From Trichoplax adhaerens (Eukaryota > Animalia > Placozoa), in the NCBI RefSeq assembly GCF_000150275.1, contig NW_002060945.1, forward strand, positions 8,510,011 to 8,574,010: 64,000 nucleotides of DNA, read 5' to 3'. Made by a program: the position numbers and the translations under genes. The notes under the pieces are model-generated. The model saw only the letters and a program-made list of their open reading frames with translations, did not search any database and was not told the origin of the DNA. Positions 44,298-52,800 of this stretch are shown piece by piece (positions within the stretch are counted from its first letter, which is position 1; each line of letters starts with the position of its first letter).

Positions 44298-45679
44298 TGT
44301 CTGAAAATAAAAAATGAGATTATTTTTAGTTTTTTAAGAAGATACTCGACTACTGTACTTACTGTATGCCAAAATATATTGTTGCAACCTTTTTATTACC
44401 ATAAATTAATAGTAACCTACTAGCTATGGCCATGAAAGTAGCTAATCGCATATGATGCGTAAAATTCAAGTTTAATACTGTACTACTAATTTTCAGTTAT
44501 GAAGTCAGTGCAACAGATTAGCGTGCTATTTGCAACCTACTTTGTGATTATAAGTAGCTATCCTGATTCTATAAATGCATCTGCTGTCCTAAAACTTGGT
44601 AAGAACTGCAAATGCGTTGTTTTAGCACTGCGTTTCTCGGAAGAGTGATTCAGATGCTCTAAATTGTTACTATACGTGTATCATTTTTAATATAGATGAT
44701 CTAAAATGGAGTGTTAGCCTTGTACTCTGTACAGTACATCATGCAATTATGATAACAGAAATTTGGGGAGTCATACTTCGATCTTTTTCTTTGTATATTA
44801 GCACATACGCGTATGCGTACATATACATATGTACAGATATCTTAGACTATCAAATATTGTTGAATTGTAATTTTGTATATGATTTTATTTATAAATATAA
44901 TTTCGCCCTGTATCATCCATATCTAGAGGTTAGATGCAAGATAGGCAAAAACTTGCCAATAAATTTATTTCATTATATAAGCGTCTTGGCATTTATTGTC
45001 TTGCTTAAAATCTGCAGTATCCTATATTTCTGTATAGTCAATAGGACTCAATGGTGCATCTACTGACACCATAATTCATGATGGTACATAATGTAGTAAA
45101 TATACTGTATGTACTAGTATATAAAAAAATGCAATGATGTATGGAGTGATAATGTGAAGTAAACGAGAACAGTGATAGTGGTATGTAAGAACGAGGGATC
45201 GACTAGCCCATTGAAATATGAAAACAGTACGATATACAGTACAGTAGTACAGAAACCCTAATGAACAGGCAAGGAGTACTAGAAGAAGACTTGAAACTAA
45301 TCGCTCTAGGATGGACAGACATTTTCGGCCTCATCTCGTCAAAACACGCGTACCGTGTATTGTTTCAAACACTTCGTTATGACAGTACTTTAGTATGCAG
45401 ATGGGCGATTTTGAATTGACTAATTTTTCTAAATTAAGTGATATTACACTAAATGTTATTATCTGTTGCTAAGTTCCGCTTGGAGGCAGTCATATAAAAT
45501 CGCCGATGTTATTAAAATTACTACCAGTGATTTAGAAAACAAACATGGGAAGATCCATACTAAGTAGGTATTTTTCGGTATTTATAGCCTCATTTGGTAA
45601 CAAACTTCCGTCTGTCTGAGAGAGAGAGAGTGCGGTCTTCTTCTACTGTACAGTACTGTACTGTACCGTACGTACACAT

Positions 45680-45792
45680 GTACGTACTGTAGGCCTACCA
45701 AGCTAGGCTGGAGTGGACCAGTACCGTACTGTAGCAGGTTAAAGGTCATATCATGGAGGGTTTTTCTTTTACCTCTATGGGGTCATACTGTA
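45680..45792 (+). repeat. Left copy of the 113-bp direct repeat flanking the foreign island
   Basis: GTACGTACTGTAGGCCTACCAAGCTAGG...CTCTATGGGGTCATACTGTA is identical by eye to 49330-49442. Confidence 0.95.
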
Positions 45793-45796
45793 TAGT

Positions 45797-46075
45797 TTGC
45801 AGGTGCCGCCCCTTAAAACCGCTAAACGAGATATTTGTGGCTTTGGAAATAGTTTGGTTTCAGCTGATGGCGTATTCTGTCGGAATCTATGTTTGACACG
45901 CTTAGTTAAAGGCCCTCTCTGTTATGGAGAGACCTTAATTCAAAATAATCTTGAAGAGGCAATTGAACTCAATAAAAATGAGGCGATGGTTGAAGGAAAT
46001 CCCTGTCCAAAGCGCATTATTGATGTGGCTGAGGCTTATTTTGAAGCAATCACTTCATTTTATGAAGACAACTAA
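45797..46075 (+). pseudogene. 3' fragment of an unknown bacterial-style gene, truncated at the island junction
   Basis: The open frame begins exactly at the junction with no ATG near its 5' end. Its TAA stop abuts the stop of the convergent ORF. Confidence 0.55.
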
Positions 46076-46771
46076 TTAAAGAGTTTTAAAGTACGGAAGG
46101 AGTTTTGAGCGAACAACTAGTTGAATCAAGAAAACGGCTATCAGGAGAAAAAAGACGATGGCAACATATTCAACTTTTGCGTAAGCAGATTTCTTAGTCA
46201 CTGAGTAATCACTTCCAAAGGAGGGCATAACTTGAACATCCCAATACTTGGGCCATTTAGAGATTGCTTGAATATTTTTAAAAACTTCTTGAAACTTTGC
46301 GGCTTTACCCATTTCTTCTTCGAAAGCTCTTATATTTTCAGTATCTGTTTCCGTTTTGTCTTCGCGTTCTGGCGAGAGGCCTGTTGTAACATACTCAACT
46401 GAAACGCTGTCAAACATAGTTGGAATTTGTGTGAGTCCTCCTCTTTTCATGCTTTCTAAACGCTCCCCGCACCAGGTCAAAGAGTCATTTAGGCTAGTCA
46501 GACTTTGTGTAATGCTTCCAGAAGCAAGAGGTTGCTGACTTGTTAAACATTCAAGAAGTTGAGTAAACTTGATATTGCTTGCTTGAAGAGCGCTGAGCAT
46601 ATTAGGAAAACAACGAGAGTTTATATAAGTCCCTATAGGTTGGAGAGATGGGGTTTTGTCTAAGTAAGTCTGTTGATCTAGACTTAATGTTGCTAAATAA
46701 CTCATTTCCCTAATTCCATATGCATTTGTCACAAAACAGCTTTGCAACAAGATAACGTAATCTACGATCAA
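46076..46771 (-). CDS. Hypothetical intronless protein with a C-terminal TM helix; probably 5'-truncated
   Basis: 231-codon ORF. The frame is open back to the palindrome at ~46795. YVAIVFFLLIAVFLIQLVV is followed by RSK. No family recognised. Confidence 0.6.
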   Translation of the reverse strand: MIVDYVILLQSCFVTNAYGIREMSYLATLSLDQQTYLDKTPSLQPIGTYINSRCFPNMLSALQASNIKFTQLLECLTSQQPLASGSITQSLTSLNDSLTWCGERLESMKRGGLTQIPTMFDSVSVEYVTTGLSPEREDKTETDTENIRAFEEEMGKAAKFQEVFKNIQAISKWPKYWDVQVMPSFGSDYSVTKKSAYAKVEYVAIVFFLLIAVFLIQLVVRSKLLPYFKTL

Positions 46772-47364
46772 TAAGTCAATTCCTTGAACTACGTATCAAG
46801 GAACGATATCTGCACTATCACGAGCACTTTTGCTCTACTAGCAGACTACACAAAGACTTAAACGCCTCGTATTTTACGTTAAACACTAAGTTGGACAATT
46901 CTTCTTTATTTCACGATATACTGCATTTATATACTATTCCTCAATAGTTCATGAGTCATAGTTAATACAATTAACATTAGAATCATTTACTGAATTAGAT
47001 ATTAATTTTAGCTACTGCTCTCTTAATGCAGACAACAGTATTTACGAACATAGACATGTAATAACTAATACAGAATAGTCAGATTACGATATGTCCTATC
47101 ACGGAACATTTCCATGATAATTTACAGTCTATCATAAGTAAATTACAATCACAATGATTCGAACTGTAAGCAGATGATTTGCATTCCCTATTATAACTAT
47201 TATAATTTCAGTATGTGTATAAGTGTCACTGTCATAAAAAGTCAGTGCTATATTAAAATACAGTATATCCAAATTAGAAGTTAACTAAATAAGGATAGTC
47301 TAACAGAATTATCCTAACATAGTTATTTCTACTGTAATACAGTATTTAACACTGTAACAGCATT

Positions 47365-47396
47365 AAAAAAAAATTTCCTGCATGATAACAGGAAAT
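47365..47396 (-). terminator. Rho-independent terminator-like hairpin
   Basis: The minus strand reads TAA-TAC-ATTTCCTG-TTATCATG-CAGGAAAT-TTTTTTTT immediately after the 317-aa ORF stop. Confidence 0.65.
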
Positions 47397-47399
47397 GTA

Positions 47400-48353
47400 T
47401 TATCCCCCAACGGGAATATGCACTTCATCTTGAGTCTCTAGGGGATCTTTGCCAAATCGTTTAACAACGGTTGACTGAATTTCTCCTCCCACTCCAGGGC
47501 GTTTTACGACAAAGACGGGTTCGATTCCTAAAAGCATTTCTCGTTGGTTTGCTAGAGCAGATCTTTTCGTTTCGAGTTCATGTGTTAGGCGGCCAGAACG
47601 TTGCAGGTGACTTTCAAGAACACCAACGGTCTCCTGAAGCCAGACAATATCCTGATCAGCAAATGGGGCGATACGTAGCATTTGAAAATTTGCTTCATAT
47701 TCGGCAAAACGTTCGAAAAGCCATTCAGCCTGTTTCCGTGTTGGAGCTGTTAAGTCTCCTAAATGATGGCTTAAGTCTCGTTCGAAGCCACACCGCTCTA
47801 TGATGATTATTGAACTTGGGTCTCGGATAATCCGGTTCGCTTTTTGAATGAGAAGAGCTTTTCCTCCTTCAAGCCACCCTGTGGTTTCAGTTGGGTCAAA
47901 TTCAGGAAGAAAGTGCCAATAGCGTTTAAAAAGCTGCAAAGTGTCTAGCAGATTTTTTTGCAGGTAAAAGTTCTTTTCTTGTGGAGATAACTCTTTTTGC
48001 TTGCGGATTTGAACAGTGGACTGTGCACAAGAGGCCGGGCAGTTCATACGTCCAAGTTCGACTTGAAGGCGCTTAACTTCAGCGGGGTTTCCTTGGGCTG
48101 CTTCAATTTCACCTAATTTTGCTTGATAAGCATGGAGATCGCCCAGAGTTTCGACAACTTGTTTTTGTTTCCGTTGTAATGAGGCGAGGTATTCCTCAGC
48201 ATTTTTTACAACCTGGGTAAGAAGCGCTGTTTGGGTTGTGTCACCGCGAAAAGCTTTTATGAGAGCGGTGCTATGGGGCTTGAACTTGAATAGTTGGCCT
48301 AAGAGTTTTTTCTCGCTCATTTTATCATCAAAGAATTGTTTAACAAAGCCCAT
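47400..48353 (-). CDS. Hypothetical intronless 317-aa alpha-helical/coiled-coil protein, bacterial-style
   Basis: Complete ATG-to-TAA ORF, 17 bp downstream of the preceding ORF, with purine-rich AAGAAGAGG just before the ATG. No family recognised. Confidence 0.75.
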   Translation of the reverse strand: MGFVKQFFDDKMSEKKLLGQLFKFKPHSTALIKAFRGDTTQTALLTQVVKNAEEYLASLQRKQKQVVETLGDLHAYQAKLGEIEAAQGNPAEVKRLQVELGRMNCPASCAQSTVQIRKQKELSPQEKNFYLQKNLLDTLQLFKRYWHFLPEFDPTETTGWLEGGKALLIQKANRIIRDPSSIIIIERCGFERDLSHHLGDLTAPTRKQAEWLFERFAEYEANFQMLRIAPFADQDIVWLQETVGVLESHLQRSGRLTHELETKRSALANQREMLLGIEPVFVVKRPGVGGEIQSTVVKRFGKDPLETQDEVHIPVGG

Positions 48354-48370
48354 AGCCTCTTCTTGACTTC

Positions 48371-49066
48371 TTATCGCTTTTTAAGGTTATTAGATTCTAT
48401 ATTTGTAGCTTTTAAGGCAGAACCCAATGCTTGGCTATTAGATTCATGCAACCAAACAGTAAGCTCTTCTTGTCCAGCATGAGCAAAACTCAGACCTTGC
48501 AAATCAGGATTGTGAGCGATGACTTTCCATGTATTTGGAACGAGCTTTAGGTTAAATAATGGGAATCGTTCTTCAGAGCTGTAGCCACACAAAAGGCAAA
48601 CGAGTTCTCTGCCAGAAGGATGGCGGTTACAGCAGTTATTTGGCTGAAGCCAGAGGCCTTGAAATGCAATCGTAGGAGGCATGCCTTCTTTTCGGTGCAT
48701 GTGCTGAGTTAAGAGTGCATAAAGTTGTGAAGAAATCTGCTCATAACGGGCATCCATAATAACAGGATCGACGCGTGCTCCAACAGGATCACAACCAGAT
48801 AAGAAGGATCTCATGATGCTTTGTTCAATCTTTGACTGATAAAAAATTAAGGAAAACCCTTGCTGGGTGGCGACATAAAAATAGTAAATCAAAGGGCCAT
48901 TAGGATCACGAGGCACGAGAGACGTTAAGACATTGACAGAGCTTCCATGTGGATTTTTCCAGTAGGGGTTTTCTGGAGGAAGACGATGTTGGTGTTGCAG
49001 ATGAGCAGATGAACAAACGTCAGAAGATGGGAGTTGTCCATGATGCATACTGGGGGATAGAGGCAT
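48371..49066 (-). CDS. Hypothetical intronless 231-aa protein with a Ser/Pro/His-rich N-terminus, bacterial-style
   Basis: Complete ATG-to-TAA ORF, first gene of an operon-like pair. No family recognised. Confidence 0.7.
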   Translation of the reverse strand: MPLSPSMHHGQLPSSDVCSSAHLQHQHRLPPENPYWKNPHGSSVNVLTSLVPRDPNGPLIYYFYVATQQGFSLIFYQSKIEQSIMRSFLSGCDPVGARVDPVIMDARYEQISSQLYALLTQHMHRKEGMPPTIAFQGLWLQPNNCCNRHPSGRELVCLLCGYSSEERFPLFNLKLVPNTWKVIAHNPDLQGLSFAHAGQEELTVWLHESNSQALGSALKATNIESNNLKKR

Positions 49067-49214
49067 GACTATTTGATGGATGTAAATTTAAAGGTGAAAA
49101 GGGACCAACGGGGGGGGGGGGGTAGCCATCTTTATGCTCCTACTCTAGAAATTAAAAGAAGAAGTATTGGGATATCTGTTGATAAGATGCAAGCATAAAA
49201 AAAGCCCTCAGAGC

Positions 49215-49325
49215 ATGCTCTTTTGCTTTTGGGCAGGCTTCCAGCATCTTATTTAAGATATGGATACGTCCCTGCTTAGCTTGAGCCAGAGCTGCACTCA
49301 TGATCTTTGGGTTAATTCCTTCAAG
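49215..49325 (-). pseudogene. pnp: Internal fragment of bacterial polynucleotide phosphorylase (end of RNase PH domain 2)
   Basis: Translates as LEGINPKIMSAALAQAKQGRIHILNKMLEACPKAKEH, matching the PNPase segment that follows the MDIK motif (E. coli-type [27 protein letters not shown]). Not in the ORF track. Confidence 0.85.
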
Positions 49326-49329
49326 TACA

Positions 49330-49442
49330 GTACGTACTGTAGGCCTACCAAGCTAGGCTGGAGTGGACCAGTACCGTACTGTAGCAGGTTAAAGGTCATA
49401 TCATGGAGGGTTTTTCTTTTACCTCTATGGGGTCATACTGTA
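49330..49442 (+). repeat. Right copy of the 113-bp direct repeat, ~440 bp upstream of the ABCD3 ATG
   Basis: Identical by eye to 45680-45792. Confidence 0.95.
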
Positions 49443-49884
49443 CAGTATAGTATTGTTTACCATCAGCGTCTTTTAACCGGGTAAAAACGTTGAAGTTTTA
49501 GGTCGCACTTTGTACATTGTCCTCCTGTCCACTCTACTGTTGGGACGTCTATAGAAAGGTGTAGAGAAAAAACTTTACCCCGTCAAAAATCTAGTGCAAT
49601 GTGGCCCATAGCTCGTAGAGTAACAAGTACTGTAGCCCACGGTGTATGGGGAGTTCGGATTGTAGGTTTTTCTTTTATCTCTATGGCTATTTGTACAGTA
49701 CAAAGTTGGATTTTGTGGAGGTTCATCGCTTCACGCGGTGTCACTCGGATTGCGAATGGCGTGACATACAGAATAATACAATTGTAATCGTCAGTGGTAT
49801 TGCACAAGTAGTAGTTACCCGGCGACATAGCTACTGCTTGGTTTGCATTATAAATCAGATCAAGACAGAGTGCATGGAAATCTG

Positions 49885-52800
49885 ATGGCGGCGATATCAA
49901 AATTAGTCGAAAATCCACGAGCAAGTGCTGCAGTACTTGGTGGAAGTTTAGCAGCGTTAATATTTATTAGTAGAAGCATATCATCACAGTAAGTAAATCT
50001 CATGCCTTAAAATATCTTGTATGGAGTTGCTTTTTACAGTATTTAACGCATTCGTTGCCGTAAGGATAGAGTTGTAAAGAGGTCATACACTACTGCACCC
50101 TTTCAGACCTTCTTACTGTAAATACTTTAAATAAGCTGATTTGTTGACGAGGTTGGTGTATAGAATCGGTTCATGGGCATGTACAGAATGGCTCTCGTTT
50201 GCTTATTATATGGAGTTTCACAAGCTGTTTCATTGCTGCCAATCCTAGCTCTAGGATGATAGTAAATTCATTCGCCTTCTACTTACTGTAGTGTGTTATA
50301 CACTGTACCGTATATGGCTGTGCAGTAATATACAGATTTACTGTACAGTGTACCGATTTTAAGTAAACTGGTTTCATACCTTGTCTATTTCATTGACAAG
50401 GTACTTGATAACTAATAATAAAAAAATTGATAATCGATTAAAATAGTACTATCGAAAGTTATCAGATATTATTTGCTTAGTTACTTAGATTTCTTCGTCC
50501 AGGAAATAACAGATCTATCTACTAAACCATTTGCTTATTATCATGTAAATCTCCTGCTTGGCTAACATCAAAATACAACACCCTTGTACAATGTACAGTA
50601 CTGTAATATCCTTATCACCATCGAATAAAATCTAGTATCTAGTTTGTTCTACTCATAACGGCAATGGATAGAATATTGATTGAATTTACCGTAGCAGTCA
50701 TCACGCTAAATTGCAATAGTTTTAAATCTACGGTATGATTTACCACAGTAACTTACAGTGTTCAGCACATTTTCTTCTATACATACGTGTGCAATGTGCA
50801 TTACTGTACAGATTGTCTATAGGTCCCCGGCTTGACATTTTTAATATTTTGGATATGTATTACTATCATCCTGTCTGTAATCCTAAAGTACCTTAGCAAC
50901 TTATCGAATTACTTTTATTGTTTAAATCCTTATAATTCCTATGGATAAGAAAAACCAAGAGTGAAATTCAAATTCTTCCAAGGAAGGTAAAAAATACATC
51001 GTAACCATGATCGTAATGGATGATGTGTTTACATGATTGTAATGAAGCAAATTGTAGTAAAACATTAAATGGATAATAATTTCATTGCATGATCGTGTTA
51101 GCCTATTTTGTGGCAGATCATTGATTTTCCTTTTCTAATATTAAACAAACTTTCGAATTCTTTTAGGGTAATGGTAAAAAGGAACTTCGTGTAGCTGTCA
51201 ATCTCAAATTTTTTCGGTATTTTAAGAAACAAACATTAGATATCATAAGCTATGTAACCCGACACAACTTTAACACATAATCTTTTGGACTACAGGAGTA
51301 TAGCGTCAATATTTCGTATACTTGTTCCGAAATTAATATGTCCAGAGGTGAGCTAAATTAGTTCAAATCTAAGTAGTGTGTTATGTGCTTAATTGCTGTA
51401 AAATATACAATAGAATCGGTAACTCGTTCAATGTAATCATGCAACTTGTTAGTAAGTGTTATATTTCATTCCGATGGCTTGTAGTACATGTTTACTGATT
51501 TTGACAGTAGGACAAAGATTTTAGATGCCAACCAGATTATGCATGATAAATTAGTGATGACAACTTATTTTATGATGTCTTTAGAGCGGTTACATGGTCA
51601 TGGTTGCCATTTCACTGGTAGCCAGAACCGCTTGTGACGTTTGGATGATTTCAAATGGAACTTCAGTTGAAAGGTAAATAAATCACTAGCAGTCTCAGCT
51701 TTAATTAATAATCAACGTCTTAATTTCAAGGTTCGTAACATAAGATAACTGAATAATTTACTCATAAGTACTGCAATAAATATTTGTTCAGCTCGATTAT
51801 TGGCCGAAACTACTCACTTTTTCTCAGCCACCTGACTCGCTTGCTTTGTGCCATGCCTATAGTATGTATCATTTTTATTAATGTTATGATATTGTGGTAA
51901 TATTTGTTACTTAAAACGTTTATATTAGCACGTGATCCACTGTACTTACTAATCCTGTGTATTCTAATTTTTTTAATTTATCAGATTTCAATCGTCAACA
52001 ATGCCTTAAAGGTACCTTCTCATTACAATGATGTTATATCGTCATCTTTCATCTACAAGTGGACATATAATAAACACTTATTCTTCTTGTTAACAGTACA
52101 GTTTAAATGAGTTGAAATTAAGATTTCGTGAGAGATTATCCAATTATCTATACCAGCAATATTTAAAGTTAGTAAAAGCTTGCCTATTTATTGGCCTAAA
52201 ATATTGTGACATACAACCTCTTTAAAAGTGCCTTATTTCTCTCGTAATAGTGGATTTACGTACTACAAAATGTCAAATATTGACAACCGAATTGCAAATG
52301 CTGATCAGTTACTTACTCAGGTGAATCTGTGCAATATACTGTATAACATAAAGAAGCAATTGTAATCTAATATAGGCCTTTGTTCTCCTTTGTTTCAGGA
52401 TGTGGAAAGATTTTGCGAAAGTGTTACAGAGCTATATTCAAACATTAGCAAGGTATAAAGTAGATTTTTCTGTCATATAGAATAAACCAGACTGTATGAT
52501 AACAGAACTAACAAACTTGTAATAGCTGATCTATGCTAACCCTAAATATTTTTACATTCAACTATAGCCCTTACTAGATATTATCATATATGCTCGTGAA
52601 TTAGCTGCTGCTATTGGTGCTCAAGGGCCAGGCTATATGCTTGTATACCTTGCTATTTCAGGCCTTGTGCTCACTCGGTAAGGACACTAATAAATTTATG
52701 ATCATACAGTAAAATACGAGACTGGTTAGTTTAATCCTCTATATTTACGCTATAAGAATAAATTTCATCGTACCTATAGATTACGACGCCCAATCAGTCG

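Follow-up and report, generated by a model that had tools for sequence, protein, structure and literature searches.

Within a 64,000-nucleotide (nt) stretch of the genome of the placozoan Trichoplax adhaerens (assembly GCF_000150275.1, contig NW_002060945.1, positions 8,510,011 to 8,574,010; hereafter the window, to which positions refer unless another contig is named), an island of bacterial DNA lies between the genes ALG14 and ABCD3, enclosed by a direct repeat of host sequence. Contigs assembled from independent public runs place this island physically in the Trichoplax chromosome, at host copy number. Judging from its alignment with bacterial genomes, it is a single chromosomal fragment from one bacterium, a member of the Simkaniaceae (Chlamydiota) other than the sequenced Simkania. 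Very probably, this piece entered by end-joining when the chromosome broke between ALG14 and ABCD3, and it is now decaying neutrally. Multi-gene bacterial insertions in animal chromosomes are well documented mainly for Wolbachia, and the island constitutes a new, well-resolved case of bacterium-to-animal DNA insertion with a Chlamydiota donor and a very early-branching animal host.

A bacterial island in the host chromosome

Exons of ALG14 lie to the left of the island and exon 1 of ABCD3 to its right (ATG at ~49885, splice at 49988), the placement that an earlier reading of the window, made from the sequence only, had proposed. The same sequence-only reading had described an exact 113-bp duplication bracketing the island. 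This duplication is real, and the full repeat is 117 nt long: 113 exact nucleotides are followed by one mismatch (T at 45793, C at 49443) and three matching bases, after which the match stops, on both sides, without further extension. Neither copy is found anywhere else in the 105.6-Mb Trichoplax assembly (1414 contigs), and the island is likewise single-copy there, apart from 46727-47359. Its guanine-cytosine (GC) content is 41.9%, compared with 33.6% in the remainder of the window and 40-43% in the Simkania-type source loci and in L113, a bacterial metagenome contig described below. The open reading frames (ORFs) between the repeat copies encode 92, 231 (209 from the likely ATG), 317 and 231 amino acids (aa). 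In a protein search, the 317-aa ORF was 100% identical to part of the Trichoplax adhaerens gene model TRIADDRAFT_54984, confirming the identity of the host.

Twenty public runs contain the bacterial part; they come from 8 studies and bear two organism labels. We compared contigs of four runs (X9, X12, X1 and X14), built from 31-letter words, with the interval 44800-50300. Across the left junction (45796|45797) run contigs of X12, X9 and X1, starting at 45763, 45779 and 45782 respectively; the right junction (49329|49330) lies within an X1 contig spanning 49215-49359. Depth over the island is host-like, at 52 against 42-46 in the flanks for X9 and at 36 against 31-36 for X12. Furthermore, one bacterial spacer of the island is interrupted by a host element whose 5-bp target duplication is perfect, and the empty form of this site occurs in other runs. 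Integration into the chromosome, which the sequence-only reading had claimed while naming unspanned junctions and a symbiont-like depth as grounds for giving it up, is thereby borne out. A free bacterium as the source of the island was rejected on account of the host-like depth and the bridged junctions.

The most obvious alternative would be an assembly chimera or contamination, in which bacterial reads were misjoined to host sequence in the 2008 assembly. This assembly is known to hold bacterial scaffolds (PMC3641634), and a run of 13 G in the reference (49110-49122) is absent from the other runs. Nevertheless, the junctions are bridged at host-like depth in runs of other studies, dating from 2020-2025; the host element and its 5-bp duplication lie inside the bacterial spacer, with an empty site in other runs; variants at half depth occur within the island; and the assembly holds neither a second copy of the island nor any other bacterial-type pnp. 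The bridging contigs, the equal depth and the host element inside the island together exclude a chimera as far as contigs can, and we regard this alternative as extremely improbable.

The sequence-only reading had taken the whole of 45797-49325 to be bacterial, which is correct for most of it and wrong for 46727-47359. This 633-bp segment is a very young, multi-copy host element with at least 40 scored copies of 98-100% identity on many host contigs (643 first-look candidates), and all eight copies checked have their own 5-bp target duplication. Within the island it occupies the bacterial spacer between a terminator and the start of the next gene. X9 and X12 carry the island without it, and their joint (46721 to 47360) is the exact empty site, so that the element is polymorphic between Trichoplax samples at this position, which implies that it has been recently mobile or still is. 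It is probably a solo long terminal repeat (LTR). As in the solo LTRs of LTR retrotransposons, its ends are TG...CA, its terminal inverted repeat is short and imperfect, its target duplication measures 5 bp, and its many near-identical copies are scattered with no partner nearby; the class is tentative, as no full-length element with internal gag/pol was seen and no search for one was made.

Two further observations concern the host flanks. Directly upstream of the left repeat copy, 45560-45676 belongs to a dispersed host repeat family with more than 30 copies (72-95% identity), and this repeat ends in a TACAG-type array. On the other side, the RNA-like contig that includes ABCD3 exon 1 has its start (49391) inside the right copy, and part of the ABCD3 5' untranslated region or promoter may thus have been duplicated onto the opposite flank of the island.

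Simkaniaceae origin and gene content

The island contains what the sequence-only reading had listed, namely bacterial-type ORFs, a terminator-like hairpin and a fragment of polynucleotide phosphorylase (PNPase, pnp). This 37-codon fragment (49215-49325, minus strand) corresponds to positions 502-538 of the 683 in the NCBIfam PNPase model (E 3.5e-8). When searched against one genome per species in 185,579 species, its 21 best genome matches were all from Chlamydiota, with 69-83% aa identity, and all others reached at most 60%; at the nucleotide level, it is 79-81% identical to Simkania pnp. At the opposite end, the 3' fragment of an amiA-type amidase gene has 88% aa identity to L113, 81% to the genome G065, 71% to Simkania negevensis and 48-54% to Rhabdochlamydiaceae. 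Because the amiA fragment is closer to its homologues in the genome family of Simkania negevensis Z and a Simkania sp. (69-81%) than to those in the Rhabdochlamydiaceae, and because gene order is shared with Simkania, we assign the donor to the Simkaniaceae; identities of 69-81% argue for a member other than the sequenced Simkania.

The classical symbionts of placozoans are Rickettsiales and Margulisbacteria, and Chlamydiota are obligate intracellular bacteria. The sequence-only reading had invoked a symbiont donor, and this proposal stands as regards an intracellular type of bacterium; as regards the classical placozoan symbionts it does not, since the best matches point to Simkaniaceae. A rickettsial or margulisbacterial donor was rejected on the ground that the best PNPase matches are all Chlamydiota. 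Two Simkaniaceae clades have only recently been found among placozoan-associated bacteria (2025-26 preprint, bioRxiv 10.1101/2025.02.27.640636), which makes the assignment ecologically plausible.

Searching the island genes within 401 Chlamydiota genomes revealed two loci that carry several of them together, which an exact look-up of their proteins assigned to Simkania negevensis Z (G064) and a Simkania sp. (G057). The closest relative of the donor is the metagenome contig L113 (Ga0180433_10002739). Without the host element, the island comprises 2895 nt, and these, read on the minus strand, align with L113 in one block covering 2737 of the 2895 nt at 76.6% nucleotide identity; island parts are 58-88% identical to L113 at the aa level. 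Read on this strand, the gene order is pnp, one large gene, a gene for a tail-anchored membrane protein and then a convergent amiA. In L113, ORFs of 576 and 209 aa are followed by a 376-aa amiA in convergent orientation, its stop codon directly adjoining that of its neighbour, exactly as at 46075/46076 in the island. Simkania sp. and S. negevensis are likewise collinear with the island, matching it in the pnp fragment, at the C-terminus of the large gene, in the tail-anchored gene and in the 3' end of amiA. The pnp-amiA regions of both Simkania genomes resemble it in order, orientation and the abutting amiA stop, and between pnp and amiA they hold lineage-specific genes followed by a gene for a tail-anchored protein of 194-241 aa.

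Both ends of the island fall inside genes, in pnp at about codon 507 and in amiA 92 codons before the stop; bacterial homology extends to 45796/45797 on the left and ends at 49324 on the right. Collinearity of the whole with one bacterial contig, together with these truncated ends, is what points to a single piece of DNA. A patchwork of fragments joined at seams was rejected, given that the whole island aligns with L113 in one block. A near-identical donor genome was not found among the genomes searched, the top match being L113.

Apart from PNPase, the gene products are poorly represented in family databases. The full-length amiA homologue matches Pfam Amidase_3 slightly below the curated cut-off (E 1.2e-5), and no further family in Pfam or NCBIfam matched the ORFs of the island or the chlamydial proteins homologous to them. 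The 209-aa tail-anchored protein, which has no Pfam family, gave no match in an exact look-up in public assemblies; it is 58% identical in aa to L113 8724-9353 and 30% identical to its counterpart in Simkania sp. (E 5e-23).

The 317-aa and 231-aa ORFs on the minus strand (ORF317 and ORF231) are parts of one large gene. In the reference they are separated by a 1-nt frame difference near 48377, and the relatives of the N-terminal ORF among the 401 Chlamydiota genomes sit inside single open frames of 525-930 aa. A two-gene operon of orphan proteins was therefore rejected, the two corresponding to the one 576-aa ORF of L113. With one frame in the relatives and a frameshift near 48377 in the island, the 539-aa model TRIADDRAFT_54984, which joins both ORFs through a predicted intron, is a gene-calling artefact, its JGI 'intron' bridging the bacterial frameshift. 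The ancestral start is the ATG at 49129-49127, with AGGAG 8 nt upstream, and downstream of the stop a terminator hairpin is predicted at 47396-47373 on the minus strand (z = -3.2).

Among 1.84 billion representative proteins, HMMER returned only 18 relatives of the large protein (best E 2e-100); five of them are full-length (525-649 aa, 30-41% identity), and the gene of the best lies between smpB and dnaN on a bacterial contig. A word-based protein search with the 317-aa ORF matched only the Trichoplax model itself, and the ESM Atlas gave no usable match. The AlphaFold2 model of the large protein (predicted local distance difference test 71) has a beta-rich N-terminal domain and a helical C-terminal domain, and Foldseek found no match to it in the PDB at E <= 0.001.

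The gene is full length in L113 and, lesions aside, in the island. At the same locus it is reduced to a 113-aa fusion of its N-terminal and C-terminal ends in S. negevensis (L085 1417-1758) and to a 36-codon remnant in Simkania sp. (L084 1507-1614). This reduction in cultured or complete Simkania genomes suggests that the gene is dispensable and decaying in the bacteria too. Features of the island and its borders are collected in Table 1.

Table 1. Features of the bacterial island and its host borders, in window coordinates.
Feature	Position	Strand	Remarks
Copy A of the duplicated host target	45680..45796		117 nt, 113 exact, mismatch at 45793; genome-unique pair
amiA-type N-acetylmuramoyl-L-alanine amidase, 3' fragment	45797..46075	+	last 92 codons and stop; chlamydial
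209-aa ORF with C-terminal hydrophobic anchor	46076..46705	-	Simkania-specific gene family; abuts amiA stop
Target duplication GCATT, left copy	46722..46726		the 5 letters fit both sides of the joint 46721 to 47360
Host multi-copy LTR-like element	46727..47359	+	633 bp, ends TGTCACA...TGTAACA; GC 30.3%
Target duplication GCATT, right copy	47360..47364		
Rho-independent terminator (predicted)	47373..47396	-	hairpin with 9-bp stem and T8, 4 nt past the large-gene stop
ORF317, C-terminal part of large gene	47400..48353	-	73% aa identity to the 576-aa ORF of L113
ORF231, N-terminal part of the same gene	48371..49066	-	starts at an internal ATG
Large-gene upstream part	49067..49214	-	ATG 49129-49127, AGGAG 49141-49137, poly-C/G run, spacer
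pnp (polynucleotide phosphorylase) fragment	49215..49324	-	~codons 507-545; cut at right end of island
Five bases GTACA	49325..49329		match neither Simkania pnp nor the repeat; filler or unexplained donor sequence
Copy B of the duplicated host target	49330..49446		117 nt; RNA-like contig of ABCD3 exon 1 starts inside (49391)

Two allelic forms, decay and transcription

Two allelic forms of the island exist, which differ in the LTR-like element, the frameshift, a deletion, the length of the poly-G run and about 27 single-nucleotide polymorphisms. In X9 and in X12, the depth at 48325-48382 is split about equally between the reference form and the other one, and both forms must therefore coexist in one sample. 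In all, up to three lesions break the frame of the large gene. At the first, the reference lacks a T after 48377 that restores the frame between ORF231 and ORF317; this T is found at whole depth in X1 and X14 and at half depth in X9 and X12. The poly-C/G run at 49110-49122 counts 13 in the reference and 5 in X9, X12 and X1; with a length of 5, the N-terminus reads MATPVGPFSP and matches L113, and the 13-G run is either a true allele or an error in the 2008 assembly. The third lesion, an extra A at 49034/49035 (ACAACTC, as against ACACTC in L113), breaks the ancestral frame in every run covering the site. The ancestral frame is thus disrupted after about 30 codons, and ORF231 hence begins at an internal ATG. 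In the other allelic form, a single open frame of 555 codons runs from 49066 to 47400, as read by script from the variants listed for that form.

The right end of the island also differs between forms. Bases 49221-49173 are 82% identical to an S. negevensis spacer located 1.87 kb farther on, including the homologous remnant of a spacer hairpin, and this match overlaps the pnp match by a few bases. Since the pnp fragment abuts a spacer found 1.87 kb downstream in S. negevensis, the reference allele appears to have suffered an internal deletion that joined pnp to the later spacer. An X1 contig matches the window rightwards from 49215 and continues leftwards as pnp; thirty of its bases translate as LSQHAPRIET, as in Simkania, with one base more than the Simkania frame. 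We read this contig as a longer nuclear allele without the deletion, because the contig shared by both (49215-49359) crosses the host junction without a branch.

Among the variants listed, the roughly 27 differing positions in the large gene amount to 16 per kb, compared with a rough 2 per kb in the left part of the island and both flanks. Between the forms 24 codons are changed, 22 of them nonsynonymously and 2 synonymously, where chance alone would give 78% nonsynonymous changes (P = 0.076); this ratio gives no sign of purifying selection. In the segment 48567-48598, seven changes fall within 32 nt between the reference and X9/X12, turning two Cys codons and one Tyr codon all to Asp. When sites were polarised with L113, the bacterial residue was found in the other form at 8 sites, in the reference at 5 and in neither at 7, so that both forms have been altered since the insertion.

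These data bear on the age of the event, which the sequence-only reading had judged very recent on the strength of intact ORFs and identical repeats. The ORFs are not intact: pnp and amiA are truncated and the large gene is broken. The polymorphic host element, the deletion and the changes in both forms contradict a very recent insertion, as do the spread of the island over 20 runs of 8 studies and a top match of only 76.6% nucleotide identity. Conversely, the base composition, still bacterial, and the repeat copies, which differ at only 1 of 117 positions, rule out a very old insertion.

Transcripts cover part of the island. X1 and X14 behave as RNA: in both, a contig departs from the genomic sequence at the splice site 49988. 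One X1 contig spans 47332-49244 at a depth of 296, as against 48-65 further left; in X14, which bears a second organism label, one contig spans 47508-49096 while the adjoining non-genic DNA is without cover. The region of the large gene is thus transcribed. Since the gene begins some 0.8 kb away from the ATG of ABCD3 and is read from the other strand, divergent transcription from the neighbouring ABCD3 promoter is plausible and would be the likeliest source of this RNA.

Transcription raises the question of whether the animal makes use of the protein, for which the data give no indication. If the large gene were domesticated, with expression driven from the ABCD3 side and diversifying selection acting on it (as might befit a decoy or modulator in interactions with chlamydiae), this could account for the RNA-like contigs of both runs with their contrast in depth, for the 555-codon open frame retained in one allelic form and for the nonsynonymous excess (22:2 against an expected 78:22). 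Yet in every run that covers it, the ancestral frame breaks off some 30 codons in, the reference carries two more lesions, and the 22:2 excess is not significant (P = 0.076) and is compatible with neutrality. The sequence shows neither an intron nor a signal sequence nor any further eukaryotic adaptation, and the searches revealed no recognisable domain or fold in the protein. An intact frame, as a domesticated gene should have, is missing owing to the lesion at 49034/49035, and the 22:2 ratio is not that of purifying selection. We consider domestication improbable on these grounds. A narrower form of the idea, in which the 555-codon form is transcribed from the ABCD3-side promoter and evolves under diversifying selection (the 22:2 excess and the three codons changed to Asp), with its product a captured chlamydial host-interaction protein used against, or in dialogue with, Simkaniaceae, seems to us more improbable still. 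The insert is instead transcribed yet decaying, with no sign of selection.

Mode of insertion and relation to known transfers

The island has no transposition machinery of its own. ORF, Pfam and NCBIfam searches revealed no transposase, integrase, reverse transcriptase (RT) or terminal repeats belonging to it, in agreement with the sequence-only reading, and its duplication of 116-117 nt is not the short fixed one of a transposon insertion. In view of this lack of transposon features, capture at a chromosome break, the comparison with nuclear mitochondrial and Wolbachia insertions that had been drawn from the sequence, is the best reading. In such a scenario, a random piece of about 3-5 kb of a Simkaniaceae chromosome would have been joined into a break between ALG14 and ABCD3. 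Two single-strand cuts about 116 nt apart would have opened the host DNA, the bacterial fragment would have been end-joined to both cut ends, and filling in of the overhangs would have duplicated some 116-117 nt of the target, replicative repair being an alternative. An error near one junction may account for the mismatch 4 nt from the left junction. The 0-1 nt of overlap on the left, the five unmatched bases on the right and the single mismatch would all fit untidy end-joining. Thereafter the insert appears to have evolved neutrally: the LTR-like element entered one allele, frame breaks arose in the large gene, the 3' end of pnp was apparently lost as far as the following spacer in the reference allele, and the two allelic forms diverged, mostly by amino-acid-changing substitutions.

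Several points weigh against this reconstruction. A target duplication of 116 nt is unusually long for simple end-joining, and the mechanism is inferred. The density of variants in the large gene, roughly 7x that of its surroundings among the variants listed, is not explained by plain neutral decay. The contigs show no empty site for the whole island, and the 117-nt repeat, being longer than their 31-letter words, would conceal an island-free allele. All read evidence consists of contigs, which makes phasing, RNA strand and true depth indirect. Finally, although we do not favour this reading, the X1 contig that continues past 49215 may stem from a living relative of the donor in the culture.

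The length of the duplication would also be accounted for by a dedicated route, in which a circle carrying the 117 nt of host sequence was integrated by a single homologous crossover, or in which the bacterial DNA travelled as cargo of a mobile element. A long, near-perfect direct repeat is the expected product of a single crossover with a circle, and 116 nt is far above the usual duplications of end-joining. This route, however, demands an extra step, the building of a host-bacterium circle, and neither a transposase nor an integrase nor terminal repeats of the island itself were found; the one mobile element it contains arrived later and has its own duplication, and the five unexplained bases at the right junction together with the mismatch at the left fit untidy end-joining better. 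We therefore hold either version of the dedicated route to be distinctly improbable, and prefer capture by end-joining at a break followed by neutral decay.

The best-known counterparts are the Wolbachia insertions in the nuclei of insects and filarial nematodes and the nuclear mitochondrial and plastid sequences (NUMTs and NUPTs), in which random genome fragments from an intracellular bacterium or an organelle lie in a host chromosome. Like the island, they show no transposition machinery, genes truncated at the ends, low or incidental transcription, neutral decay and later host transposons. Microhomologies of 0 to a few nt are typical of their junctions, whereas the island is flanked by a target duplication of 116-117 nt; the donor here is a Simkaniaceae chlamydia and the host a placozoan.

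Previously, Driscoll et al. (2013) described 12 genes of bacterial origin on large scaffolds of the Trichoplax assembly, including a chlamydial-type rsmE; the reads of the strain sequenced yielded no chlamydial 16S (PMC3641634). These transfers share with the island the host genome, a bacterial origin and a place on large eukaryotic scaffolds; they are single, mostly intact annotated genes, whereas the island is without annotated function. Neither the island nor TRIADDRAFT_54984 was found in the main text of that study (PMC3641634) or in a literature search. The reported rsmE (C1413:1052248-1052952) is an intact, bacterial-type frame of 247 aa that scores 122.9 bits against a cut-off of 41 bits. 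It is only 36-44% identical to its homologues in Simkania and Rhabdochlamydia, compared with 58-88% between island parts and L113, which indicates an event separate from the island, either older or different.

The island accounts for the odd gene model TRIADDRAFT_54984, and its two junctions and 116-nt duplication are informative on break repair in placozoans. The allelic differences, comprising the LTR-like element, the deletion and the frameshift, are haplotype markers for a clonally propagated animal. Above all, the island is a datable molecular record of a past infection, in which a Simkania-like bacterium lived closely associated with the propagating cell lineage of Trichoplax.

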